Made by a program: the position numbers and the translations under genes
Assembly (NCBI GenBank): GCA_019828565.1
Contig: JAHDYR010000038.1
Span: forward strand, 760,735-824,734
Length of the DNA stretch: 64,000 nucleotides
Origin: Carpediemonas membranifera BICM
Lineage: Eukaryota > Protista > Fornicata
Direction: 5' to 3'
The notes under the pieces: generated by a model
Told to the model about the DNA's origin: nothing
Databases searched by the model: none
The model's input: only the letters and a program-made list of their open reading frames with translations
Shown: piece by piece, positions 90 to 61,301 of the stretch
How the letters are laid out: each line of letters begins with the position of its first letter
How positions within the stretch are numbered: position 1 is the first letter of the stretch

Positions 90-656
90 CTAGTTCAGGA
101 TTGAGGCGGCGGCGGAGGCGTTGAAGGACTTGTAGTAGACCGCCATCTCGGCCTCGCGTTGATTCATACCACAGCGCTCGTAGAAGCCGACGTTCTTGTC
201 GCTGCAGGCGAGGATGGTTTTGTAGCAGCCCATCTCACGGCCGATTTCGATGAGGGTCTTAACGATGACCTTACCCAGACCACGACCGCGGAAGGCGGTG
301 TCGACGACGATGTCCTCGATGTGGCCGACGAGGGAGCCGCCACGGATAAGCTTGGGTTCCGCGAAGATGGTGCCAGAAGCGACGACCTTGCCGGTGATGG
401 TGGACTCGACCACGAGGACGGCGTGAAGGGGGTTCGTCTCGGACCAGTGAAGGAAGTGGTAGTATCGCTCGAACGTCATCTCGGGGGCATCAGTGAGCTG
501 GGCAAGGAGCTGCGTGTGGTCCTTGTAGAAGTCCTGCTGGGAGGCCATGCGGATTATCAGATCCGTGCCCAGATTCTGCGTGAAATCGTACGTGAAATGA
601 GCGCTTTCGAACTGGCGCGTCGTTTCGCTAATGAAATGGGAGTTTTCGGTTTGCAT
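90..656 (-). CDS. GNA1: Glucosamine-6-phosphate N-acetyltransferase (GNAT family)
   Basis: Motifs EPKLIRGGSLVGHIEDIVV, FRGRGLGK and GCYKTILACSDKNVGFYERCG are typical of GNA1/GNPNAT1. Confidence 0.9.
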   Translation of the reverse strand: MQTENSHFISETTRQFESAHFTYDFTQNLGTDLIIRMASQQDFYKDHTQLLAQLTDAPEMTFERYYHFLHWSETNPLHAVLVVESTITGKVVASGTIFAEPKLIRGGSLVGHIEDIVVDTAFRGRGLGKVIVKTLIEIGREMGCYKTILACSDKNVGFYERCGMNQREAEMAVYYKSFNASAAASILN

Positions 657-898
657 TGCTATTCTTTGCTATTGTTGCTGAGTTGTGAGTGGCGTTACGA
701 TGTCACTGCTTGAGAGTACGTAGTGAAGATGTCACAAGGGGCATTTGCCGTAAAATGCACCGCGAATTCCGGGCCATGCGGCTGCCCCACGCCATGGTAG
801 GGCTGGCTGGCCTTCCTTCAGATCCAGCAGACATACAGCTATCCGAAATTATTTTTACAATCTGCGAGATATCGGGCGAATCAGCGATATACAGTAAA

Positions 899-2275
899 TC
901 ACTGCCGCGGGCTATACGTAGTGTGGAGCAGCTCGTGGGCCTCGTGACTGCCGGGGGCGCCACCAAGCATGGACGCGTACAGCCGCTGGAGAGTGTCGTT
1001 CTCCTGGGACTTGCGGTGGCCCTTGGACCTGTCGATGCTGTAGAGGCCCTCGGCCCGCTTCGGAACGTTCTTCTTGAAGGCCTTGCCCTTGGGCATCCCG
1101 CCGCCGCCGACACAGCCGCCGGGGCAGGCCATGACTTCAACAAAGTCGAACTTATCGCCAGCCTTGATGCGCTTGATGAGCTTGGCGATGTTGTCGCCGC
1201 CGCTGACGACCGCGACCTTCAGCTCCTTGCCGTCGAGCGCCACCGTCGCCTCCTTGATGCCGGCCTTTCCAGGGCGGACGGCTCCGTCAAACTCTACGTT
1301 GGGGGCGGGCTTGCCAGTGGCAGCCTCGTGAGCGAAACGGAGAGCAGCCTCCATCACGCCACCGGACGCGCCGAAGATGTCACCGCCGCCGGTCGACTCG
1401 CCGAAGAACTCGTCAAAGTCTGCTGCCGGGAGGGCCTTGAGGTCGACCTTCTCGGCAGTGAGCATGCGGCCGAACTCGCGAACGGTGCAGACCTCATCGA
1501 TGTCGCCAGAGAGCTGCTCGCGCTTGATCTCGTCCTTCTTGGCGGTGCAAGGCATGAATGAGACAAGGTAAATGTCCTCGGGCTTGACACCGAGCACCTG
1601 GCTGAACTTGTGGCGAATAACAGCGCCAGCCATGCCTTGGGGCGAGCGACAGGAGGAGAGGTTGGGGATGAGCTCCGGGTAGACCTTCTCGACCATGTTG
1701 ACCCAGCCGGGGCAGCAGCTAGTAAACATCGTGCCCTGGCCCAGCCGGGAGAGCAGCTCGGTGCCCTCCTCCATGATGGTCAGGTCGGCACCGGTGTTGG
1801 TGTCGAAGACATAGTCGAATCCGAAGGCCTTGAGGGCGGCTACCATCTGGCCGGTTGAGTCGGTGCCCGCGGGGAGGTCGGCCTCCTCGGAGATGCCGAC
1901 GCGGACGGATGGGGCGGTGATGGCGACACAGATCTTGCCGTTCTTGTTCTTGTTCTTGAGGGTCTCGAGGACTGTCTTGGAGGCGTCCTTCTCGTAGAGG
2001 CAGTCGACTGGACAAACGACGGCGCACTGGCCGCAAGAGATGCAGTTAGTGTCCTTGAGAGGGGCGTTACCGACAGTGATCGGGGGTTCGGGATCGTCGG
2101 ATTCCTCGTATACGTTGAGAGACTGGCTCTCGCACGCATCCACGCAGCGATCGCAGAAGATGCACTTGGCGTAGTCCCTCATGATCGAATTCGAGGAGGC
2201 GTCCGTCATCATCGCGGACAGAGTCCGGGGGAATAGCGTAGAGGCTGAAAAGGACTGAGTGAGGGCTGAAAGCAT
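899..2275 (-). CDS. hydA: [FeFe]-hydrogenase (group A) with 2x[4Fe-4S] ferredoxin domain and probable MRO targeting peptide
   Basis: H-cluster motifs L1 TSCCPGW, L2 MPCTAKKDE, L3 EVMACPGGCVGGGG. Two CxxCxxCxxxC motifs. C-terminal AHELLHTTY. N-terminus MLSALTQSFSASTLFPRTLS is Ser/Thr-rich and has no acidic residues. Confidence 0.95.
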   Translation of the reverse strand: MLSALTQSFSASTLFPRTLSAMMTDASSNSIMRDYAKCIFCDRCVDACESQSLNVYEESDDPEPPITVGNAPLKDTNCISCGQCAVVCPVDCLYEKDASKTVLETLKNKNKNGKICVAITAPSVRVGISEEADLPAGTDSTGQMVAALKAFGFDYVFDTNTGADLTIMEEGTELLSRLGQGTMFTSCCPGWVNMVEKVYPELIPNLSSCRSPQGMAGAVIRHKFSQVLGVKPEDIYLVSFMPCTAKKDEIKREQLSGDIDEVCTVREFGRMLTAEKVDLKALPAADFDEFFGESTGGGDIFGASGGVMEAALRFAHEAATGKPAPNVEFDGAVRPGKAGIKEATVALDGKELKVAVVSGGDNIAKLIKRIKAGDKFDFVEVMACPGGCVGGGGMPKGKAFKKNVPKRAEGLYSIDRSKGHRKSQENDTLQRLYASMLGGAPGSHEAHELLHTTYSPRQ

Positions 2276-2498
2276 CGTGCTATTGGTTTTCCCTGTCGGT
2301 CAAAGTCATGCTCGAGTCGAGTGCCGCCGCGGACAACAAGTCTTCAGTAACAGGACAGACACATGCATGGCAGAGCTGCAGCATGAACATGGCTGCCCTT
2401 GGCGGGGGAGCCTTCAGCCGGGCGACAATCACAGAGACGAAAGTAAGAGGGCCATGCCGAGGGTTTGATGAGAAATCCTGATGTTTACTATGATACAC

Positions 2499-4322
2499 CT
2501 ACTTTCGGACGAGCCATGGCCGGTCAGCCTGGAACACGCCCTGGAATCCGTCAGCGCCGTATGCCAGCTGGAGCTTGCTCCTCAGCAATGCCCTGATCAG
2601 GTTCTCCATCTCCCGCGACCTCCGCAGCACATGGCGAACCTCCCTCGCCAGGGTCTTGTTCTGCCCCTGCAAGATATACATGTTGGCGAGCTCCTTTTCC
2701 AGTAAATGGATTCGGCTGATTAACGCAGCCTCGCGCTCCTTGGAGCCACCGCTAAGCTTCAGCGTCTCCAGCAGCTCGGCGGGCGGGACGACGGCGTAGT
2801 CCTCATCATCTGATTGGCCCACCTCTCCAGGGGCCACGACCTCGCCCGCCTGGGAGACGCTGGCCCTGTCCGTCTCCATGTACCCGATCACTGCCGCCGA
2901 GGACCTATCCGCCCTGGGCTTGGCCGGGGCTGCTGGGGGTGGTCTCCTGGCTTTGGTCGGGGCGGTCTTGCCAGCTGCGGGCTTGGACGCCTGTGAGGCA
3001 GGCTTTGGAGACTGGGCGACCTGCCCCTCCTTCGGCCCTTCCCTCGGCGTGGCTCCTATGCTCGCTGTCCCCTGAGTCCCGCCGACCGCGAGCTGGACCA
3101 TCGCGGCGGGGGGCGGCGTCTGCGTCCGACAGTCCCTCCCACTACGGCCACTGGTGCTGGAGCCAGCACTGCCACTGCCGTCAGCCTTGTCCCTGTCCCG
3201 CCTGTGTCGCCGCCTCGAGCCGTCTCTCGGGGACTTGATCGCCTTCTTGCTCAGCTTGGTACGTAACCGACACTCGCGGCCCGGCCTGCCCGAGTCTCGC
3301 TCGGACTCACTGGACGAGCTCACGGCCCCCTCCATGTGGGCCCGGTGCTTCTTCCTCCTCCTTGCCCCCTTCGTCGACTCGCCAGAGTCATAACTCGAGT
3401 CAGAGTCAGAGTCGCCGGGCTCGGTCTTGGCCCCTCTCCGACGCGCAGGGCGGTCCCCGCCAACTTCCCCGCTCTCCTCGGCTTCCTTGAGCTGCTGGAC
3501 CCGTCTGGCCCGGCGTGCGTCCCACGTCGCCTCGTCGTCATCACTCAGCTCCAGACGCCCCCGCTCACCGTAGTCGGGCACCTCAGGCACCACCTCCTGG
3601 CCGAGCCTCGTGCCGTGGCCGGGAGCGTAGTCGGACCCCTGGGCGTCTCGGGCAAGCTGGCTGTTGCGGCGTCTGCCGCCAAGGGTGGAGCCGGTCCTCT
3701 GGCGGCTGTTGGCGCCCAATATGCTGGTAGATGACGTGTTCGACCGTAGCAGACGGGGGGAATTGATGCTTTCATGATGAGAACCGCGCGACATGGACGC
3801 ACGCGATGACCCTGGCCGGCTCGGCCTCGGGATGACCGACATGTGCACTGGGACGCCCTTCGCCAGGTCCAGGGTGGCGAGCTCCTCATTGGTCGACCTA
3901 AGGTTGTCCCGTATGTCGTGTGCGAGATCCGTGGTGTCGTGGCCCTCGTGGAACAGCCGGCACAGCGTCTTGAACAGGGCCTCCAGCTCACCCTTGCACT
4001 CGAGGTACGTGTTGAAGACGTCCTCGCTCAGGTCAGCGTACTGCTCGATGCTGTCTGGCGGGGGTTCATCCGGCATGAAGGCAAAGGGGTCTGGCATCGT
4101 GTCGATGGAGTTCTGCTGCATGTGCACTCGATCCAGGGTCTTCAGCAGGCGTTCCACCTCTTCGCGGTTGGAGGGAGGTAGTTCGCCCTGTGCATCATCG
4201 TCGAGGTTCGTTAGCTTCTCGTCGATGTCCTGGAGGGCCGATGCGAGGGCTATTCGGTCTTTCTCGGAGAATCCTTTTTCATTCTTCCCGCGCTGGCTGT
4301 AATAGTCAAAATATCGGGGCAT
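2499..4322 (-). CDS. Hypothetical protein, low-complexity centre, helical/coiled-coil ends
   Basis: 607-aa ATG-initiated ORF with coding-like GC3 bias; no recognisable motif. Confidence 0.65.
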   Translation of the reverse strand: MPRYFDYYSQRGKNEKGFSEKDRIALASALQDIDEKLTNLDDDAQGELPPSNREEVERLLKTLDRVHMQQNSIDTMPDPFAFMPDEPPPDSIEQYADLSEDVFNTYLECKGELEALFKTLCRLFHEGHDTTDLAHDIRDNLRSTNEELATLDLAKGVPVHMSVIPRPSRPGSSRASMSRGSHHESINSPRLLRSNTSSTSILGANSRQRTGSTLGGRRRNSQLARDAQGSDYAPGHGTRLGQEVVPEVPDYGERGRLELSDDDEATWDARRARRVQQLKEAEESGEVGGDRPARRRGAKTEPGDSDSDSSYDSGESTKGARRRKKHRAHMEGAVSSSSESERDSGRPGRECRLRTKLSKKAIKSPRDGSRRRHRRDRDKADGSGSAGSSTSGRSGRDCRTQTPPPAAMVQLAVGGTQGTASIGATPREGPKEGQVAQSPKPASQASKPAAGKTAPTKARRPPPAAPAKPRADRSSAAVIGYMETDRASVSQAGEVVAPGEVGQSDDEDYAVVPPAELLETLKLSGGSKEREAALISRIHLLEKELANMYILQGQNKTLAREVRHVLRRSREMENLIRALLRSKLQLAYGADGFQGVFQADRPWLVRK

Positions 4323-6904: not shown

Positions 6905-9272
6905 CCCGCGTGCCTCTCGCGGTCGAGTCGTATCCACGGCACTGCGAGTATCATCCGCTGGTCGAGGTTGACAGGCGAGGGTATCGACCGAACGCCCTGG
7001 GGCACCGGGAATCCGCAGATAAACGATGAGTGCGGTGCTTGGCCTTCTTGAACCAGGCGTGCACGCTGGGTCCAGGAACCTCGCGAGGGTGGTGCGGTCG
7101 ACCCGGCTGCGGTTTGACGGGGAAGGAGGGCAGGGAGAGTAAACGGAGACGGCGACATGGAGCACGAGCTGGCAGGGTCAAGCTGCTCCGAGCATCCATC
7201 GCACTGCTACAACAGACCTTTACTCATTCCACGTATGGCCGCACCTGCACCTCATGTGTTGGCACCCGCCGTCCTTGTAGTAGCGCACGCCGCACCCGGG
7301 GCAGCGGCGATAGCCCAGTCGGTTCGCCAGCATCTCGTCGTAGTGCTCGCAGCTGCCGTCGTGGATGACGGGGTCGTCGTGGCCGAGGCAGACTGTGTTC
7401 CCGCACCCGCGGCACGCAAGCTGCCTCCGGTTCGCGCTGACCGTGGCCGAGCGATGGCAGTGGGGGCACGCGAACGTGCGCAGCCTGGCGACGCCCTCGG
7501 GCAGGTCGACTGTCTGGCGCGGCGCCATCTCGCACTCGCCGCCGTAGTGGGCCATGTGCTCTTCCTGGCTGGCCACACAGAGCAGGCACTTGTGGCAGAA
7601 GTCCTGGCCGCACCGGCACGCCGAAATCTTGCAGCTGTCCAGGTCGCCCTCGCGCGTTGTCAGCTCGCCGCATGTGGGGCAGCGGCGGATGACGGGGACG
7701 TCCACGGCGGCGCCTCTGCCGAGCGTGACCAGACGGCACGTCTGGAGGATGTCGTTCTGCTCGACCAGGGCGTCGATCTCGGCCCGCGAGTAGGGCACGC
7801 GGCGCGGGATGACGTAGAAGTCGGCTGCCGCGACTGCTGTAGCAGGGGCCGAGTCGAGCACCGCCTGGCGCATCTGGCCGGCGTCATCCAGACGAGGGAG
7901 GCGGGCGCCCCCCGCGCAGTCGGAGTACACGCGGTGGTCGTCGTGGAGGGTCACGCCGACGGAGGCGGGCTGGGGGAGCTGGCCGCCGAACACGTGGAAG
8001 GCGAAGCGGCGGCGCGTCTCGTCGTCCTCGAGCACGGCGCGGAGGGCGTCCTGCACGCCCTGGCTGTCCGCGGGGAAGCGCAGCGGGGCGAGCACGGCGG
8101 CGACCGTGAGCGGGTTGGGGCGCACAAGCAGGGCCCGCAGCTGGGCGGCGGTCAGCGCGAGGACCTTGGCGCTGAAGCGCGTCTTCGCGGCCATGCCGTT
8201 GCGGACGATCTGCATGCGCTCGGCGAAGCGGCGTCTCACCTCGTCGCCGCGCGCCTTGAGGTCGCCCTCGAAGCCCTCGAGCGGGCACGCGGCCGCAGCC
8301 TCCGCAACAGACCGCTGCAGCGCCCGGGCGACGATGGGCATCAGCGCTCCCAGGTCGACGCGGCCGCCCGTGAGCGCGACGAGCCAGGCGTCGCTGACCA
8401 TGTCCGCGGGCAGGGTGATGCCGTCGAGCAGCATGAGCTGCAGCACGCGGCCGAGCCCCAGCAGGACCGGGCGCAGGTCGTCGAGCGGCATGCCGAGGGC
8501 GTCGGGCGAGAGGACCAGCGTGCCCTCGCGGAAGATGGGCACAGCGAACTCCATGCCCCCGACGGCCTGGCGGACGGCCACGCGCGGCAGCTCGACGACC
8601 AGGTCGGACAGGGCCTTCGCGGAGTCGTCGCCCGAGAGCGTCGCGGGGATGGCGAACAGGTCCTCCTCGCACGCGGCGATGGTGGCCAGGCTCGCCGAAA
8701 CGTCGTCAGCGAGGGCGATGTCGATCGGCTCCTCGCGGAACATCTGCAGGCGCGCGCGGTCGATGTCGTCGACGAAGGCGTGGGCGCTCGCGAACCTGCT
8801 GCTCGCCGCGTTGAGGTCGACCTCGGGATCCAGCTCGTTGGCCGAGGCGGCGAAGAGGCCGTCGGCCAGGGCGCGGCGGACGGACCAGCGGGCCTCGGGG
8901 TGGGTGGCGAGCATGCCGGAGAGCACCTCGCGCATGGCGTCGGGGACGGCGACGGTGGCGAGCAGGGCGGTGCAAAGCTGGTCGTCGTTGACAGTTGAGA
9001 ATTCTGTGAGTTCACCGATGAGGAGAGCGAGCAGCCTCTGGCAGAAGGCGGGGTAGTCCGGCGCCATGGCCCCGAGCATCGTCAGGCCCGCGTGGTAGAC
9101 GTCTGCGGCCTGCTGCTCGCGGTGGCTCAGCTTCTTCCCGGCCTTGCGGGCGGCGATCTCCTCGGGCGCGCTGAAGGCGAGCGTGCCGATGTTCACTCCG
9201 GTCGCGGTCGCGTTCACGGCGTCCATGTTCGAGGCCGTCTCGAAGTCGACGAGCACGGGGTGGCCCTCGCGC

Positions 9273-9304
<32 letters not shown>

Positions 9305-12300
9305 ACAGACGCCCGCGCTGTGCAGGTCGTGGATCGCGGTGAGCAGGCCGCGGAGCAGTCTGCGCTGAGTGTCGGGCGAGTCGGCTGGGGCGTCGCGCAG
9401 GTGGCGCTCGAGGCGCTCCATGACGATCGCGCCGGTCTTCCTCTCAGGATCAGAGAGGTCGAGGAGGACGAAGTGCAGCCTGGGCACGGCGGGGCTGTGC
9501 GCCATGCGCGACAGGATGCCCGCCTCGCGGTCGCAGAGCTTGCGCTGGTGCGTGCTGTCGAGCTTGAAGGTCTTGGCGAAGTAGGTCTGGCCGTCGCGGG
9601 CCACGATCTGGCATAGCGCTCTGTTCTCGCTGACGGTCGACTCGACGGTGAAGTCGGACAGCGACAGGTCGGCGCGCATCTCGGGGAGGTCCATGAGGTG
9701 GGCCAGCCCCATCTCGCGCAGCTCCGTGAAGAGGCTGGCCGACGGCGCGGCGGACACCTTCAGCTCGGGGCAGAGCCGGACGAGCTGCGGCGTGCGGCGG
9801 GCCAGGACGGCGTTCATCTCGGCGATGCTGGCGTTCACGGCCCCGAGCTCGGCCGCGACCTCGGCGGCCTGGGCGTGCCTGCGGCGGCGACGGAGGTAGC
9901 TGCCATCGTCTTCGAGCTCCTCGGCCTTGCTCTTGAGGTGCTGGTAGTCGCCGAGCGTCTGGAGCTGCGCAGTGATGGCGTCGGCCTCGGCGAACCCAGC
10001 CACGTGGACCTCAGCCTCGGCGGCCAGGCCAGTCAACTGGCGAATGGTGCGCTCCTCGGTGCTCGTGTCATTGACAAGCTCCTTCCGACCGAGGGCCCAC
10101 TGCCACGTCTCGCGGACGGCCTGCTGGAGGAAGGCGCGGAGCGTGGCGTACCTAGCCTGCAGCTCGGGCGCGAGGGTGGGGAAGCCGGCGACCTCGTTGT
10201 CAGCGGCCTTGAGCACGCGGGCCATCTCGTCGAGCGAGGGGAGAGACTCTGGCTCGAAGGCGGCGGCGCCGTCGACGATGGCCGAGGCCGCCTGGTAGTC
10301 AGCGCTGACAGCTGCGACCGTCGCCTCGAGCGCCTCGACCCCGGCCTTGGCCTGGGCGATGACCGCCTCGTACTCGGCGATGCGGGTCTCTGGCTGGCGT
10401 CTGGCATGGCCGAGTCGGCTGATGAGACCAGCGGGCGACGGGATGGGGCCAACGCCATCGTGGGCCGGGATGGCGGCCGAGAGCAGGGGGTGGCCCTCGA
10501 GCATGGCGCTGATGTCCGCGGCGCGGTTGGCTTCGGTGAACCGGCCGGTCTGGGGCGAGGCGCAGAACGAGGCCAGGGTCGCCTTTAGGTCGGACAGCTC
10601 AGCACTGAGCATGTTGATCTGCGCGGTGCTGTCGGCCTTGACTGCTGCGAGCTCATACATCGTGCAAGATAGCTCAGACCTCGTGTCGAATAGCTCAGCT
10701 CTGAGCAGCCCCATGTTCTGCTCGGCCCGGCTCTCCTGCTCGGCCATGGCTGTCTGAAGCATGCGGCAGTTCCCATCAGAAAGGATCGCGTCGACCTCGA
10801 GGGCATGCCGGTCGGCGCTGAACAGGCCATCGGTCAGAGTGACGGTTGTGGCTGGGTCGGCGGTGGTGACAGTGAAGCTGCTCGGCACTGCGTGCGATGA
10901 GACGTGAGTCACGACCTGCCTCAGCTGGTCAACAGTCGCGTCGATCAGGAAAACGTCCGAGACGGCTCCCGAGCAAAGATCGGAGACAACCTGGGCACAC
11001 CGGCTGGCGTTGAAGCATCTGACAATCTTGGCAAGCCCGGCGTCCTCGGAGTCTGTCTCGGCGAACTTGTTCTCCAGCCAGACTCTGGCGGCGGGGCGGG
11101 TCAGCGTCATCGTGAAGGAGCGGGGCAGACCAGTGGCGAGGAAGTGGAGGAGGATGCGAGCGAGGTCGCAGGGGAGTGCTGCTGAGTCGCCTGGGTTGAT
11201 GGCGATGTCGGCGTCGGGGGCGACTGGGCTGGAGCAGCGCTGGTTGACGGTGGCCAGGAACTGGGGGATGCGGGGGAGTGTGCTCCAGAGCCTGACTGTA
11301 TTGTCGTTGGACCCAGAGACGAGGATAGAGCCGTCTCGGGAGAAGACGACGCTCCTCACCACATCACCATGCCCCGAGAGCGTCCTGATCAGTGCCCCGG
11401 TCGCGCCCCACTGCTTGATAGTTTTGTCTGCAGACCCAGACGCCAGAGTCCTGCCGTCGGGGGAGAAGGCGAGGCCAAACACAGAACTGGTGTGCCTGGT
11501 GTGCCCAAAGGGCGTGGCCGGCATGGCAAAACCCGCTCTGTTGCCGAATCCCCCGACCTGCGCAGTCTGCCCGAACGCGGACCTCGGTACATCCCTGCTG
11601 TGCCCAGCGAGGGTAATATGGGGAATAAGCTGGCCAGTTGCAGGGTCCCACAACTTGACGGCGTTATCGCTGCCGGATGCGACGATGGCCCCATCGGGTG
11701 ACACGGCAATGCTGTAGACTTGTGCGCCATGGTTCATGGTCCTGATGCATGCGCCAGTGGCGGAGCTCCACTGCTTGATCGTGCTGTCAATACTTCCAGT
11801 GTAAATGGTCGAGCCATCAGGGGAGATGGCCACGCCATACACATGATGGCCATGCCCTGTGAGTGTCAGCCTGCACTGCCCTGTCGCGACGTCCCAGACC
11901 TTGGCGGTCGTGTCATCCGATCCGGAGACCAGGGTGCGGCCATCAGACGAGAATGCAAGGCGCCACACAAATCCAGTGTGCCCACTGAGTGTCTGGGTCT
12001 GCTGGCCTGTGGCTGCGTCCCAGAGCTTGACGAGATTGTCCCGCCCCCCAGACGCGATGGTCGACCCGTCCGGCGACACGGCAACGGCGTACACATAGCC
12101 TCCATGCGTCATGGTCCTGATACACTGACCAGTGGCCGAGTCCCACTGCTTGACGGTGCCGTCAAGTGAGGCACTGAAGATGGTGCCGTCGGGGGAGGTG
12201 GCGACACCAAGCACCTGATTGCCATGCCCTGTCAGTGTCTTAATGCACACACCAGCATCCATAGGCTCTGTGGACCGCGTGTTCCACGCTTCGAGCGCGA

Positions 12301-13063
12301 GCTCAACCGAGCCATCTTCATGGTCGGCCTCGAGTCTGCCATCCACCATCGTGACGGTAACGGCGGGCTCAGTGAGCTCCATCGTCAGCGTATCAGGTTC
12401 TATGCCCGCGCTGAGCAGGTACTGGACGACCTGCTCGAGGTCCTGGACGGTGATCGGCGTCTCGCCTCGCTTGCGGACCTGGATGCCCTCGGGGCCGGGG
12501 CGCTCGGAGATTGCGGTGCGGATCTGAGCGTCTACTGCTCTGCAGTCGTCGCTGCGTGAGAATGCGGCCTCGATACGTACCACTGGCTGTGTAATCATGA
12601 AATTTGCGGATCAAACGCGTCAGGCGTGCTGTGTGAGAGAATCGCGCTGCAGCCGTGTTGCTGCTGTTGTAACGCACCATCTGTGTGAGAATAGCTCCGG
12701 GATAGCGTACTTTCGGCAGCTTCGCGTCATCGAGAGTTTGTGTGTTGCTCGAATGTCGCGTGACGAAAATGGTCTAAACTCCGCTGCCTCCGCAACACCC
12801 CGCGCCGTCAGCATTTACCTGCGCCCGGGCGTCCTCCCCCTCATCAGGTCCCCGGCCGTGACCTTGGTCGACTTCAGCACGCTCAGCGGCACCCTCCGCC
12901 CCGTAGTCCATCGCCAGCACAATGCTAGGTTTACAGCGCTCACTCGAGCAGACTGATGCGGCAGACCTTGCAGCCCACGAACCCGTCCCGGACGCTTCAA
13001 GGCGGTCGCTTCGAACGGCAGCGCGATTTTCGGGCGTAAACTGCTCGCGACCGACATGGGCAC
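6905..13063 (-). repeat. Copy A of duplicated unit (full-length WD40-kinase-HECT-RBR gene plus flanks)
   Basis: Reverse complement aligns with 35177..38050 from GTGC(C)CATGTCGGTCGCGAG to GAGGCACGCGGG, and with 59931..61446. Confidence 0.9.
7220..12598 (-). CDS. Multidomain protein: N-terminal repeat, WD40 propeller, coiled coil, Ser/Thr kinase, HECT-like domain, RBR-type Rcat/IBR/Rcat zinc fingers
   Basis: About 7 GH..SPDG..SGS.D..VK.WD repeats (~11280-12262). Kinase FAKTF, HRDLKPEN, DFE, GTLAFSAPE, ADVYHAG (~8850-9660). HECT-like GLGRVLQLMLLDG...RRRFAFHVFG...SDCAGGARLP (~7850-8700). IBR and CPGC..KDGGCQHMRCRCG (7220-7690). Confidence 0.9.
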
Positions 13064-35176: not shown

Positions 35177-38050
35177 GTGCCATGTCGGTCGCGAGCAGTT
35201 TACATCCGAAAATCGCGCCGTTCGAAGCGACGCAGTGCTGTGGCCTGGATCACGGCCACTACTGCAGCGAGGCTGGGGAGTGGTATCGCGTGCAATGGTC
35301 AGGGACCTTCATCTATCTAAACATGGTCGGCCCCACGTTGTCCGGGACTGGTTCGTGGGCCGCAAGGTCTGCCGCATCAGTCTGCTCGAGTGAGCGCTGT
35401 AAACCTAGCATTGTGCTGGCGATGGACTACGGGGCGGAGGGTGCCGCTGAGCGTGCTGAAGTCGACCAAGGTCACGGCCGGGGACCTGATGAGGGGGAGG
35501 ACGCCCGGGCGCAGGTAAATGCTGACGGCGCGGGGTGTTGCGCAGGCAGCGGAGTTTAGACCATTTTCGTCACGCGACATTCGAGCAACACACAAACTCT
35601 CGATAACGCGAAGCTGCCGAAAGTACGTTATCACGGAGCTATTCTCACACAGATGGTGCGTTACAACAGCAGCAACACGGCTGCAGCGCGATTCTCTCTC
35701 ACAGCACGCCTGACGCGTTTGATCCGCAAATTCCATGATTACACAGCCAGTGGTACGTATCGAGGCCGTATTCTCACGCAGCGACGACTGCAGAGCAGTA
35801 GACGCTCAGATCCGCACCGCAATCTCCGAGCGCCCCGGCCCCGAGGGCATCCAGGTCCGCAAGCGAGGCGAGACGCCGATCACCGTCCAGGACCTCGAGC
35901 AGGTCGTCCAGTACCTGCTCAGCGCGGGCATAGAACCTGATACGCTGACGATGGAGCTCACTGAGCCCGCCGTTACCGTCACGATGGTGGATGGCAGACT
36001 CGAGGCCGACCATGAAGATGGCTCGGTTGAGCTCGCGCTCGAAGCGTGGAACACGCGGTCCACAGAGCCTATGGATGCTGGTGTGTGCATTAAGACACTG
36101 ACAGGGCATGGCAATCAGGTGCTTGGTGTCGCCACCTCCCCCGACGGCACCATCGTCACTGCGTCACCTGATGGCACCGTCAAACAGTGGGACTCGGCCA
36201 ATGGTCAGTGTATCAGGACCATGACGCATGGATGCTATGTGTACGCCGTTGCCGTGTCGCCGGACGGGTCGACCCACCCCGAGGCCCGCTGGTCCGTCCG
36301 CCGCGCCCTGGCCGACGGCCTCTTCACCGCCTCGGCCAACGAGCTGGACCCCGAGGTCGACCTCAACGCGGCGAGCAGCAGGTTCGCGAGCGCCCACGCC
36401 TTCGTCGACGACATCGACCGCGCGCGCCTGCAGATGTTCCGCGAGGAGCCGATCGACATCGCCCTCGCTGACGACGTTTCGGCGAGCCTGGCCAGCATCG
36501 CTGCGTGCGAGGAGGACCTGTTCGCCATCCCCGCGACGCTCTCGGGCGACGACTCCGCGAAGGCCCTGCCCGACCTGGTCGTCGAGCTGCCGCGCGTGGC
36601 CGTCCGCCAGGCCGTCGGGGGCATGGAGTTCGCTGTGCCCATCTTCCGCGAGTGCACGCTGGTCCTCTCGCCCGATGCCCTCGACATGCCGCTCGACGAC
36701 CTGCGCCCGGTCCTGCTGGGGCTCGGCCGCGTGCTGCAGCTCATGCTGCTCGACGGCATCACCCTGCCCGCGGACATGGTTAGCGACGCCTGGCTCGTCG
36801 CGCTCACGGGCGGCCGCGTCGACCTGGGAGCGCTGATGCCCATCGTCGCCCGGGCGCTGCAGCGGTCTGTTGCGGAGGCTGCGGCCGCGTGCCCGCTCGA
36901 GGGCTTCGAGGGCGACCTCAAGGCGCGCGACGACGAGACGCGCCGCCGCTTCGCCTTCCACGTGTTCGGCGGCCAGCTCCCCCAGCCCGGCTCCGTCGAC
37001 GTGACCCTCCACGACGACCACCGCGTGTACTCCGACTGCGCGGGGGGCGCCCGCCTCCCTCGTCTGGAGGACGCCGGCCAGATGCGCCAGGCGGTGCTCG
37101 ACTCGGCCCCTGCTACAGCAGTCGCGGCCGCCGACTTCTACGTCATCCCGCGCCGCGTGCCCTACTCGCGGGCCGAGATCAACACCCTGGCCGAGCAGAA
37201 CGACATCCTCCAGACGTGCCGTCTGGTCACGCTCGGCAGAGGCGCCGCCGTGGACGTCCCCGTCTACCGCCGCTGCCCCACATGCGGTGAGCTGACAACA
37301 CGCGAGGGCGACCTGGACAGCTGCAAGATGTCGGCGTGCCGGTGCGGCCAGGACTTCTGCCACAAGTGCCTGCTCTGCGTGGCCAGCCAGGAAGAGCACA
37401 TGGCCCACTACGGCGGCGAGTGCGAGATGGCGCCGCGCCAGACAGTCGACCTGCCCGAGGGCGTCGCCAGGCTGCGCACGTTCGCATGCCCCCACTGCCA
37501 TCGCTCGGCCACGGTCAGCGCGAACCGGAGGCAGCTTGCGTGCCGCGGGTGCGGGAACACAGTCTGCCTCGGCCACGACGACCCCGTCATCCACGACGGC
37601 AGCTGCGAGCACTACGACGAGATGCTGGCGAACCGACTGGGCTATCGCCGCTGCCCCGGGTGCGGCGTGCGCTACTACAAGGACGGCGGGTGCCAGCACA
37701 TGAGGTGCAGGTGCGGCCAGACGTGGAATGAGTAAAGGTCTGTTGTAGCAGTGCGATGGATGCTCGGAGCAGCTTGACCCTGCCAGCTCGTTCTCCATGT
37801 CGCCGTCTCCGTTTACTCTCCCTGCCCTCCTTCCTCGTCAAACCGCAGCCGGGTCGACCGCACCACCCTCGCGAGGTTCCTGGACCCAGCGTGCACGCCT
37901 GGTTCAAGAAGGCCAAGCACCGCACTCATCGTTTATCTGCGGATTCCCGGTGCCCCAGGGCGTTCGGTCGATACCCTTGCCTGTCAACCTCGACCAGGGG
38001 ATGATACTCGCAGTGCCGTGGATACGACTCGACCGCGAGAGGCACGCGGG
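35177..38050 (+). repeat. Copy B of duplicated unit (inverted relative to A)
   Basis: Near-identical to the reverse complement of 6905..13063, apart from two large deletions and a ~108-bp insertion at 35232..35339. Confidence 0.9.
35735..37735 (+). CDS. Internally deleted paralog (666 aa): N-terminal repeat, partial WD40, partial HECT-like, RBR fingers
   Basis: Same start and stop as copy A. In-frame deletions of 1052 and 74 codons account exactly for 1792-666. Could be a pseudogene. Confidence 0.7.
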   Translation: MITQPVVRIEAVFSRSDDCRAVDAQIRTAISERPGPEGIQVRKRGETPITVQDLEQVVQYLLSAGIEPDTLTMELTEPAVTVTMVDGRLEADHEDGSVELALEAWNTRSTEPMDAGVCIKTLTGHGNQVLGVATSPDGTIVTASPDGTVKQWDSANGQCIRTMTHGCYVYAVAVSPDGSTHPEARWSVRRALADGLFTASANELDPEVDLNAASSRFASAHAFVDDIDRARLQMFREEPIDIALADDVSASLASIAACEEDLFAIPATLSGDDSAKALPDLVVELPRVAVRQAVGGMEFAVPIFRECTLVLSPDALDMPLDDLRPVLLGLGRVLQLMLLDGITLPADMVSDAWLVALTGGRVDLGALMPIVARALQRSVAEAAAACPLEGFEGDLKARDDETRRRFAFHVFGGQLPQPGSVDVTLHDDHRVYSDCAGGARLPRLEDAGQMRQAVLDSAPATAVAAADFYVIPRRVPYSRAEINTLAEQNDILQTCRLVTLGRGAAVDVPVYRRCPTCGELTTREGDLDSCKMSACRCGQDFCHKCLLCVASQEEHMAHYGGECEMAPRQTVDLPEGVARLRTFACPHCHRSATVSANRRQLACRGCGNTVCLGHDDPVIHDGSCEHYDEMLANRLGYRRCPGCGVRYYKDGGCQHMRCRCGQTWNE

Positions 38051-59183: not shown

Positions 59184-59930
59184 GGCATGTAAATGGAGTA
59201 GAGAGGCAGGATTGAGTCGAATGCTGTCGAGGCTAAGGGATGATGTGGATCTCGATGGCTGGGTGACTGGGCCGAGTGGCAGTGGAACACGGGTATGGTG
59301 GTGTAGGGCTGCTGGGGCAGGCCGGGGCTCGACCCTGACTGACGCCATGCAGGTGAGGTAATCAGACTTTCTGTTTAAGTGACAGCAATCATCAGCTCAT
59401 GTCGAAGCTGTCGAACATTGGAGTGAAGCTGCATGGATGTTGCTGAGTTCAGCACCGAATGTCCCCGACGATTGTTGCTTGCGGCTTACCGTCTCTCGCT
59501 TGTCACAGCGGCCGATCCCCGGGGACATCCCCGGCCTCATCGCCACTGCATTCAGGAGGCGATATCATAGCACAATTGTCTCAGCAAAGCTTAGTACCAG
59601 TGAAATTACACGGGGCGTCGTGCCATCACTGGACGTCCTCCGCGCCCTCCTCTCCAGCATCCGCTTTGCCCCCGCTCCACTCAGTCTCCTGGGGTGAGGA
59701 CCTCCCGACCCTTGTCTACACGCTGCCTCCAGGGCGCTGTGGGGGCTATCCTGGTGCAGGCTCCGATCCCGACCTCCAACGGACGGAGAAGGGGGTCGAG
59801 GAGGAGGGACTGGCTCGAGCCTGCTGCCACAACACCAGGCGTACGACGTGTTTACCGACCCAGTATTCCTGCCAGCCGGTATCAGCGGAGAGTACTTCAG
59901 CTGGAGCCGTTGTCTGGACAGAAGGGGCCT

Positions 59931-61301
59931 GACATGCCGCTCGACGACCTGCGCCCGGTCCTGCTGGGGCTCGGCCGCGTGCTGCAGCTCATGCTGCTCG
60001 ACGGCATCACCCTGCCCGCGGACATGGTCAGCGACGCCTGGCTCGTCGCGCTCACGGGCGGCCGCGTCGACCTGGGAGCGCTGATGCCCATCGTCGCCCG
60101 GGCGCTGCAGCGGTCTGTTGCGGAGGCTGCGGCCGCGTGCCCGCTCGAGGGCTTCGAGGGCGACCTCAAGGCGCGCGACGACGAGGTGAGACGCCGCTTC
60201 GCCGAGCGCATGCAGATCGTCCGCAACGGCATGGCCGCGAAGACGCGCTTCAGCGCCAAGGTCCTCGCGCTGACGGCCGCCCAGCTGCGGGCCCTGCTTG
60301 TGCGCCCCAACCCGCTCACGGTCGACGCTGTGCTCGCCCCGCTGCGCTTCCCCGCGGACAGCCAGGGCGTGCAGGACGCCCTCCGCGCCGTGCTCGAGGA
60401 CGACGAGACGCGCCGCCGCTTCGCCTTCCACGTGTTCGGCGGCCAGCTCCCCCAGCCCGGCTCCGTCGACGTGACCCTCCACGACGACCACCGCGTGTAC
60501 TCCGACTGCGCGGGCGGCGCCCGCCTCCCTCGCCTGGAGGACGCCGGCCAGATGCGCCAGGCGGTGCTCGACTCGGCCCCTGCCACAGCAGTCGCGGCCG
60601 CCGACTTCTACGTCATCCCGCGCCGCGTGCCCTACTCGCGGGCCGAGATCAACACCCTGGTCGAGCAGAACGATATCCTCCAGACGTGCCGCCTGGTCAC
60701 GCTCGGCAGAGGCGCCGCCGTGGACGTCCCCGTCTACCGCCGCTGCCCGGCGTGCGGCGAGCTGACAACGCGCGAGGGCGACCTGGACAGCTGCAAGATG
60801 TCGGCGTGCCGGTGCGGCCAGGACTTCTGCCACAAGTGCCTGCTCTGCGTGGCCAGCCAGGAAGAGCACATGGCCCACTACGGCGGCGAGTGCGAGATGG
60901 CGCCGCGCCAGACAGTCGACCTGCCCGAGGGCGTCGCCAGGCTGCGCACGTTCGCGTGCCCCCACTGCCATCGCTCGGCCATGGTCAGCGCGAACCGGAG
61001 GCAGCTTGCGTGCCGCGGGTGCGGGAACACAGTCTGCCTCGGCCACGACGACCCCGTCATCCACGACGGCAGCTGCGAGCACTACGACGAGATGCTGGCG
61101 AACCGACTGGGCTATCGCCGCTGCCCCGGGTGCGGCGTGCGCTACTACAAGGACGGCGGGTGCCAGCACATGAGGTGCAGGTGCGGCCATACGTGGAATG
61201 AGTAAAGGTCTGTTGTAGCAGTGCGATGGATGCTCGGAGCAGCTTGACCCTGCCAGCTCGTTCTCCATATTGCCGTCTCCGTTTACTCTTCCTGCCCTCC
61301 T
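59931..61301 (+). repeat. Copy C of duplicated unit (5'-truncated)
   Basis: Homology to A and B begins abruptly at GACATGCCGCTC (59931) and runs through the stop codon and 3' flank into the DHHC gene. Confidence 0.9.
59934..61205 (+). CDS. HECT-like plus RBR-finger fragment (423 aa from internal ATG); possible pseudogene
   Basis: Open frame MPLDDLRPVLLGLGRVLQL...GGCQHMRCRCGHTWNE*, matching the C-terminal quarter of copy A. Confidence 0.55.
   Translation: MPLDDLRPVLLGLGRVLQLMLLDGITLPADMVSDAWLVALTGGRVDLGALMPIVARALQRSVAEAAAACPLEGFEGDLKARDDEVRRRFAERMQIVRNGMAAKTRFSAKVLALTAAQLRALLVRPNPLTVDAVLAPLRFPADSQGVQDALRAVLEDDETRRRFAFHVFGGQLPQPGSVDVTLHDDHRVYSDCAGGARLPRLEDAGQMRQAVLDSAPATAVAAADFYVIPRRVPYSRAEINTLVEQNDILQTCRLVTLGRGAAVDVPVYRRCPACGELTTREGDLDSCKMSACRCGQDFCHKCLLCVASQEEHMAHYGGECEMAPRQTVDLPEGVARLRTFACPHCHRSAMVSANRRQLACRGCGNTVCLGHDDPVIHDGSCEHYDEMLANRLGYRRCPGCGVRYYKDGGCQHMRCRCGHTWNE

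Follow-up and report, generated by a model that had tools for sequence, protein, structure and literature searches.

The last approximately 530 residues of a 1,792-residue protein encoded by Carpediemonas membranifera BICM, a free-living metamonad, are a composite, highly diverged module of ubiquitin-ligase type attached to a WD40-kinase protein. The gene is a single uninterrupted open reading frame (ORF) on the minus strand of the window, by which we mean the whole analysed stretch of 64,000 nucleotides from contig JAHDYR010000038.1 of assembly GCA_019828565.1 (positions 760,735 to 824,734; C26:760735-824734 in the searched genome of 24.2 Mb and 69 contigs). Behind the kinase domain, the module is made of a HECT-like domain, a linker and three zinc fingers. 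It is best described as homologous to both the HECT and the RBR families of ubiquitin ligases (E3s), and the homology of both parts, the HECT-like domain and the RBR-type fingers, is very probable. The features of the module, in positions of the window, are as follows.

7220..12598, minus strand: whole ORF, 1,792 amino acids (aa), with an N-terminal region, a WD40 propeller, a coiled coil, a protein kinase, the HECT-like domain and three zinc fingers.
8114..8806, minus strand: HECT-like N-lobe, aa ~1265-1495 (predicted model, VIA-align, hhalign).
7814..8113, minus strand: HECT C-lobe-like region, aa ~1496-1595, with three helices, short strands, an LP motif and a helix (colinear hhalign extension).
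7916..7918, minus strand: Cys1561, placed by hhalign within one column of the catalytic cysteine of HECTs; the Cys-to-LP spacing of 7 is that of HECTs.
7682..7813, minus strand: linker, aa 1596-1639 (44 residues), conserved, with no Cys/His pattern.
7532..7681, minus strand: finger 1, aa 1640-1689, two-zinc linear finger of IBR/Rcat type, C-x2-C ... C-x-C-x4-C-x2-C ... H-x4-C, the closing H-x4-C being shared with both IBR and Rcat.
7631..7633, minus strand: Cys1656, which does not bind zinc and precedes the third zinc ligand by four residues, a placement like that in the Rcat catalytic loop, in an invariant C-K-x-S.
7349..7468, minus strand: finger 2, aa 1711-1750, IBR-like, C-x2-C-x14-C-x2-C-x4-C-x2-H ... 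H ... C.
7238..7303, minus strand: finger 3, aa 1766-1787, half an Rcat, consisting of the first zinc site and the loop G-G-C1779-Q-H1781-M.
7262..7264, minus strand: Cys1779, which occupies the catalytic position of an Rcat and is followed two residues later by His1781 (phmmer, BLASTP).
7220..7222, minus strand: stop codon, straight after the first zinc site of finger 3.

The domain directly behind the kinase has a HECT fold, with a confident N-lobe and a weaker C-lobe. An internal HECT-like domain had been claimed by the first-pass annotation of this DNA, which was made from the sequence alone, and the motifs quoted there are all found in ORF 7220-12598 of the minus strand: GLGRVLQLMLLDGITLP at aa 1381-1397, DETRRRFAFHVFG at aa 1526-1538 and SDCAGGARLP... 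from aa 1559. The codons it gave for two cysteines, 7916-7918 and 7262-7264, are those of Cys1561 and Cys1779. An AlphaFold2 model of aa 1250-1792 (543 residues) was built on 17 paralogues and had a predicted local distance difference test (pLDDT) of 80-96 over aa ~1290-1500. The first helices of the C-lobe had values of 73-85 and the remainder was below 50, the stretch under 50 covering aa ~1539-1637. When the HECT-like domain was searched with Foldseek against the PDB, ranks 1-46 were HECT structures, the best of them HUWE1 (6xz1, E 2e-5). VIA-align on the Foldseek matches gave Z 12-14 over 170-250 aligned residues, with model residues 16-246 corresponding to the N-lobe and an extension to model residue ~295, which comprises the first C-lobe helices. 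The strongest fold test was an exhaustive VIA-align search of 48,161 PDB representatives, independent of Foldseek. All 16 chains at Z of at least 8 were HECT ligases (Z 9.1-13.8), namely UBE3C, E6AP, HUWE1, Rsp5, UBR5, HACE1, Itch, AREL1, NEDD4-2, Tom1, WWP1, Ufd4, TRIP12 and HECTD3. The rows below the HECTs were mostly RBR fingers lying on the zinc module (Z 3.6-5.6), and unrelated chains reached Z 3.6 at most.

The profile-profile comparison was performed with hhalign on a pair of alignments, the paralogue family together with its homologue P0019 from another assembly (A4) and the four canonical HECTs of the C. membranifera genome (A3). The score was 45.8 (E ~2e-5, probability 74-78%) over 281-283 colinear columns that span both lobes, while the controls, reversed profiles and 20 column-shuffled templates, scored 10.6-24.1 with E of at least 0.026. 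The N-lobe alone scored 26.2 (E 0.005). Shuffling the C-lobe columns of the template in 30 trials left a full score of 27.7 +/- 1.3 (maximum 34.5), so that the colinear C-lobe adds approximately 18 score units, an amount reached by none of the 30 controls. The secondary-structure elements of the C-lobe region also come in a fitting order. In the alignment, G-L-G-R-V-L-Q-L falls on the conserved HECT helix and D-E-T-R-R-R-F-A-F-H-V-F-G-G on the HECT motif E-x-R-x-x-L-x-F-V-T-G. The N-lobe also holds the motif LxPxLxGxGRxLxLxL...W..AL, which is invariant across the paralogue family. A language-model search listed HECT clusters alone (score 0.85) and is used here only as a lead. The HECT resemblance expected from the first-pass annotation was thus detected by Foldseek, by VIA-align and by hhalign.

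Several searches weigh against the assignment to HECT. The Pfam HECT family (PF00632) did not match the C-terminus even at E up to 10, and the C-lobe alone was not significant in hhalign and aligned out of register. The family profile found no HECT among PDB sequences, where it gave a weak match to the RING region of Rad8 (E 0.013), and no canonical HECT among 1.84 billion representative sequences, where its 20 matches were family members, one foreign cluster (P0019) and low-complexity noise. The shape search of the ESM Atlas with the 543-residue model, which returned mostly RBR/IBR clusters with a template modelling score below 0.3, was uninformative. That no sequence search reaches a HECT would suit a domain unrelated to HECT whose likeness is a chance or convergent arrangement of helices, and VIA-align's own note states that mostly helical models can reach Z ~13-14 by chance. 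We consider such a coincidence highly improbable: the 16 top chains out of 48,161 are HECTs without exception and unrelated folds stop at Z 3.6, the colinear match obtained by a separate, profile-profile method lies far above its controls, and the order and spacing of the motifs agree with those of HECTs.

The linker is followed by three linear zinc fingers of RBR ancestry, in the order of an IBR/Rcat-fold finger, an IBR-like finger and half an Rcat. The gaps between them, 22 and 16 residues, are RBR-like. In a Pfam scan of the last 526 aa of the ORF, IBR alone matched (E 1.7e-6). Over the 163-aa finger module, Pfam IBR scored 33.1 bits (E 5.9e-8), above the cut-off of 24.3, and IBR_1 gave 25.7 bits for finger 3 alone and 28.9 bits for fingers 2-3. 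The best Pfam IBR stretch is finger 1, and the paralogues score 25-28 bits there on IBR positions 16-58. A second model, covering aa 1493-1792, had pLDDT of 70-80 in fingers 2 and 3 and 55-67 in finger 1. Foldseek ranks 1-46 for the finger module were RBR ligases (RNF216, HOIL-1, parkin, HHARI, HOIP, ARIH2). According to VIA-align, finger 1 (aa 1633-1690) resembles the Rcat of parkin 412-465, HHARI 338-391, HOIP 867-926 and RNF216 (Z ~5, root-mean-square deviation 2.4-2.8 A), finger 2 (aa 1704-1763) resembles the IBR of HOIL-1, HOIP and RNF216 (Z 5.6-6.3), and the end (aa 1745-1792) resembles ARIH1 326-373.

The sequence comparisons of single fingers gave a similar order. Finger 3 matched the Rcat of ARIH1 (1wd2) in a phmmer search of the PDB (E 0.004) and the Rcat of the genome's own Ariadne-like RBR in BLASTP (E 3e-5), and finger 1 matched the genome's own RBR in both its IBR (E 0.027) and its Rcat (E 0.067). 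The finger-1 profile searched against PDB sequences gave noise alone (C2H2 fingers, bL32) and no Rcat-specific match. In the third high-scoring segment pair of BLASTP, Cys1656 stands opposite the catalytic cysteine of the genome's own Rcat. All 11 sequences compared, P0019 among them, keep Cys1656, Lys1657 and Ser1659; Cys1656 is missing in the paralogue L016, and no His follows it in the window protein. The first-pass annotation had described three fingers, the first Rcat-like, the second an IBR and the last an Rcat that breaks off ahead of the second zinc site, all of which VIA-align, Pfam IBR and BLASTP uphold, and it had left this third conserved non-ligand cysteine unweighed. It had also stated that RING1 is absent. 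No RING1 was indeed found: the linker lacks the Cys/His pattern, the Pfam scans returned no RING family, and the RING1 of the genome's own RBR gave BLASTP E 2.8.

The ORF ends in ...C-R-C-G-H-T-W-N-E-stop. The truncation of the Rcat is common to five copies on contig C26, and P0019 is cut at the same position. Downstream of 7220-7222, no continuation of the Rcat was found in three frames, and the downstream DNA is shared with other copies. A recent frameshift or an assembly error was considered and rejected on these three grounds, the lack of a continuation in any frame, the agreement of the five copies and the same end in P0019.

P0019 (also P0026) is the sole homologue outside the C. membranifera genome among the 1.84 billion representatives. 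It is a protein of 1,104 aa, encoded at 255-3569 of PPCM01000873.1 (L029) in the unannotated assembly GCA_002919055.1, and it is 27% identical to the window protein, its best C. membranifera matches being the copies with a long tail, i.e., with the full finger 2 and the half Rcat. Its layout is coiled coil, kinase, HECT-like domain, finger 1, finger 2 and half Rcat, without WD40. It ends at the same alignment column and keeps all zinc ligands, both finger cysteines (Cys1656 and Cys1779) and the motifs G-C-x-H and D-[ST]-C-K-x-S. As the domain order and the long tail with the truncated end are common to this 27%-identical protein, they are ancestral. The same assembly carries the closest known UBE2D to that of Carpediemonas (89% identity), and so comes from a relative.

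If the fingers are taken by themselves, the module might be only an atypical RBR, with finger 1 docking the ubiquitin-conjugating enzyme (E2) in the place of RING1, catalysis confined to the half Rcat, and an inert HECT-like domain. This picture is in line with the presence of three zinc modules spaced as in RBRs, with a finger 3 that has the full catalytic loop including the His, and with the Foldseek alignment of 200-240 columns of the finger module to whole RBRs such as HOIL-1. Finger 1, however, matches IBR/Rcat and not RING1, both by sequence and in the model, and we know of no RBR that works without the second zinc site of its Rcat. We regard this explanation as unlikely.

Turning to the C-lobe, Cys1561 lies one alignment column off the catalytic cysteine of the genome's canonical HECTs in hhalign and is retained in 12 of 12 core paralogues. 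In P0019, a C-lobe cysteine is found one alignment column from Cys1561, with four extra residues ahead of LP. Among the aligned copies, all those with fingers 1-2 keep Cys1561, and none of those with a RhoGEF domain or an early end does. Two of the latter, L013 and L015, end approximately 30 residues further on without a cysteine at this position, and L016 has lost Cys1561 while retaining finger 1. The first-pass annotation had held both catalytic cysteines, Cys1561 and Cys1779, to be intact. Both residues are present, but the identification of Cys1561 depends on a C-lobe of low confidence that is not significant when aligned alone.

On the reading that we prefer, the module of the long-tail copies would be a working, cysteine-dependent E3 that forms thioesters; judged from the sequences, we give this an even chance. 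That any ubiquitin thioester would sit on one of three cysteines (Cys1561, Cys1656 or Cys1779) is, to us, a similarly balanced proposition. The predicted E3 module would serve as the output of the WD40/kinase part. The Rcat-type cysteines, namely Cys1779 with His1781 and perhaps Cys1656 in C-K-x-S, would be the most likely ubiquitin acceptors, because it is their motifs that show the best conservation between species. The role of the HECT-like domain would be mainly that of a platform in the place of RING1, and Cys1561 may be a second ubiquitin site. Cysteine chemistry is argued for by the retention in P0019 of three non-ligand cysteines at or next to catalytic-type positions, and also by the retention of the G-C-x-H and C-K-x-S motifs.

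A number of observations count against a working ligase. In the five divergent paralogues L013-L017, the place of Cys1561 is taken by H, Q, L, T or V. Cys1561 also lies within the low-confidence part (pLDDT <50) of both models and is not surrounded by the canonical H-T-C-F-N context of the HECT cysteine. Approximately 230 residues follow the HECT C-lobe, so the HECT-like domain is internal and not at the extreme C-terminus, and canonical HECTs, which are hindered by tags at the C-terminus (PMC3738095), need a Phe at position -4 and a free C-terminus for ligation (PMC3738095, PMC4327156). The small E2-binding subdomain is approximately 30 residues short, which appears as a gap opposite a beta-strand segment of the template in hhalign and as a short loop in the model. 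Since this subdomain is shortened and RING1 is absent, no recognisable E2 dock is left. Finger 3 lacks the second zinc site of a complete Rcat and is absent from most paralogues. The sole sequencing run with the window sequence is of uncertain kind ("RNA?") and consists of short contigs, so that it indicates the existence of DNA or RNA and does not imply transcription. A co-fold of the HECT-like domain with the UBE2D-type E2 P0059 from Paratrimastix, used as a substitute for the intron-split native UBE2D, scored 0.00 and bears neither way. The first-pass annotation had suggested that the N-lobe replaces RING1; the shortening of precisely the E2-binding small subdomain does not favour this.

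The same observations would suit a pseudo-ligase, in which both parts are true homologues and non-catalytic, forming an appendage with a structural or regulatory role for the kinase, or a module that binds ubiquitin or protein. The kinase and the HECT-like N-lobe are the sole constant of the family, with fingers, RhoGEF or nothing behind them, and the family-invariant residues are core N-lobe positions, with Cys1561 not among them. To these are added the shortened E2-binding subdomain together with the absent RING1, the failure of Pfam HECT, and an internal position that contradicts the rule for active HECTs (PMC4327156). In contrast, Cys1656, Cys1779 and the motifs G-C-x-H and D-[ST]-C-K-x-S are kept at 27% overall identity, the C-lobe cysteine of P0019 is a single column away from Cys1561, and the aligned copies with fingers 1-2 all keep Cys1561, which copies with RhoGEF or an early end never do. 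Loss of catalysis is a possibility that we take seriously, though we lean away from it.

The MYCBP2 RCR ligase is a two-cysteine relay, and a relay of that kind, proposed by the first-pass annotation, was also weighed. E2-bound ubiquitin would dock on the HECT-like N-lobe and pass to Cys1561, then to an Rcat-type cysteine (Cys1656 and/or Cys1779) and finally to the substrate. The co-occurrence of Cys1561 and the fingers across paralogues, and the presence of both in P0019, are in its favour. A passage of PMC3738095, citing Salvat 2004, describes impaired ligation in canonical HECTs with a blocked or extended C-terminus, and for this reason an internal HECT might need a downstream acceptor. On the other hand, it is the E2-binding subdomain that is cut down, L016 has finger 1 without Cys1561, and finger 3 is missing in most paralogues. 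As the tree of the HECT-like domain lacks resolution, the co-occurrence may reflect no more than common descent. We find the relay quite unlikely, and equally so its extension, in which the HECT-to-Rcat transfer would be controlled by the protein's own kinase and WD40 sensor and the downstream acceptor would compensate for the internal HECT position.

Compared with canonical HECTs (E6AP, NEDD4/Rsp5, HUWE1, UBE3C), the window domain shares the N-lobe fold (Z up to 13.8), motifs that are colinear through the C-lobe and a cysteine seven residues ahead of LP, as in the catalytic loop. It differs in its internal position, the absence of a Pfam HECT match, a small subdomain approximately 30 residues shorter, the missing H-T-C-F-N context and a cysteine that is not invariant in its family. 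Since it fails on the Pfam match, the C-terminal position and the invariant cysteine alike, it does not belong to the HECT family as defined by these three. With RBRs (ARIH1/HHARI, parkin, HOIP, HOIL-1, RNF216), the window protein shares helix-joined linear fingers of IBR and Rcat type and the loop G-C-x-H-M. Unlike them, it has no RING1, begins with an IBR/Rcat-fold finger that carries an extra cysteine, ends in an Rcat with one zinc site, and has its finger module preceded by a kinase and a HECT-like domain. With RING1 absent and the Rcat incomplete, it is not an RBR.

The likeness to the MYCBP2 RCR ligase is limited to several candidate nucleophilic cysteines in one chain, and no relation of sequence or fold was found between that ligase and the window module. 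G2E3 combines E3 activity of N-terminal PHD/RING-type fingers with a C-terminal HECT-like domain reported to be inactive. It thus resembles the window protein in bringing a degenerate HECT-type domain and zinc-finger ligase modules together, whereas the window protein has the reverse order, fingers of IBR/Rcat type, and a kinase and WD40 propeller attached. Plant KEG and MEKK1 are kinase-E3 fusions that use RING or PHD-type domains; they too hold a kinase and a ubiquitin-ligase-type domain in one polypeptide, which in the window protein is HECT-like plus IBR/Rcat. In the literature, no paper was found on a HECT-type fold followed by IBR/Rcat fingers, nor on this WD40-kinase family.

The N-terminal part of the ORF contains two further domains.

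11279..12310, minus strand: WD40 beta-propeller, aa 97-440 (Pfam WD40, E 2e-73, seven stretches).
8861..9601, minus strand: protein kinase domain, aa 1000-1246 (Pfam Pkinase, E 1.2e-20).

The WD40 repeats show strong similarity to each other and likewise to the repeats of the paralogues. They are reminiscent of the highly repetitive WD40 sensors in fungal NWD/HET-E proteins, and one database relative is named HET-E. The kinase keeps H-R-D-L-K-P-E-N and has D-F-E instead of the usual D-F-G, with D-Y-E at this place in P0019. Annotated C. membranifera paralogues carry the database names "Protein kinase domain" or hypothetical. In the run of uncertain kind (X1, contigs), the coding part is covered and the bins 7000-7066 and 7134-7200 past the stop codon are empty, which could be a transcript end or a contig gap across a repeat.

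In the C. membranifera genome, at least 80 places match the module, and 18 of these lie within open frames of at least 1,000 codons. The constant core of this family is the kinase with the HECT-like domain, and the parts behind it vary: fingers, RhoGEF (L014/P0011 and L017), nothing (L013, L015), or one finger and a long tail (L016/P0013). In L014 (G000:C7:326000-335999) and L017 (G000:C13:960000-967500), RhoGEF directly follows the HECT-like domain and replaces the zinc fingers. A Ras-like N-terminus is present in L016/P0013. Although L016 and L017 group as sisters (support 99/98), their C-terminal domains differ. Eight of the 11 inner branches in the tree of the HECT-like domain are without resolution, and P0019 is placed on a very long branch.

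Most C. membranifera paralogues have a short tail. Their homology breaks off sharply within finger 2, at aa 1736, and nothing left over from the tail was found downstream of them. The short tail, found among L005-L012 and L019 on contigs C22, C2, C5, C8, C7, C49 and C26, ends approximately 8 aa past the second C-x2-C of finger 2. The long tail occurs only in the five C26 copies and in fragments at C26:305091 and C14:190136. Tails seem to have been exchanged between paralogues, because the window copy is 93% identical to the short-tail L005 in the HECT-like domain.

Besides the ORF at 7220-12598, which is the only full-length copy, the window contains two others.

35735..37735, plus strand: copy B, 666 aa, a mosaic in which aa 1-180, 1231-1459 and 1513-1792 are joined in frame.
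59694..61205, plus strand: copy C, truncated at its 5' end, homologous from aa 1370 to the end, 97% identity.

The first-pass annotation had stated that all three copies keep both cysteines, Cys1561 and Cys1779. This is literally correct, with the qualification that copy B is a mosaic and copy C begins at aa 1370. Copy B lacks the kinase and has lost aa 1460-1512 of the HECT-like domain through a second deletion that keeps the frame. Its frame has stayed open, with the N-terminus and first WD40 blades (180 aa) joined directly to the end of the kinase. This mosaic suggests recombination-driven shuffling in the family. As the family as a whole is mosaic and was found in just one other assembly, fast, lineage-specific evolution is indicated.

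The genome has an otherwise present ubiquitin system, with E2s including the UBE2D type, four canonical HECTs and two canonical RBRs, and the module is therefore an extra. A six-frame scan of the genome with Pfam HECT found just four loci, all outside this ORF. The UBE2D-type and RAD6-type E2 genes (L038, G000:C67:68895-72200; L037, G000:C8:374427-377831) each have an intron after the first ~40 codons.

Surveys hold that the eukaryotic HECT domain must be C-terminal and never gains domains behind it (PMC4327156). The paralogue family of C. membranifera breaks this rule at the level of fold and domain order, and joins both known eukaryotic thioester E3 families in one chain, beside a kinase. 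It is of clear interest for ubiquitin biochemists. If the module is active, it would show a HECT fold working without a free C-terminus and an Rcat working in the absence of RING1 and with a single zinc site; an inactive module would be a clear case of a ligase fold reused as an appendage of a kinase.

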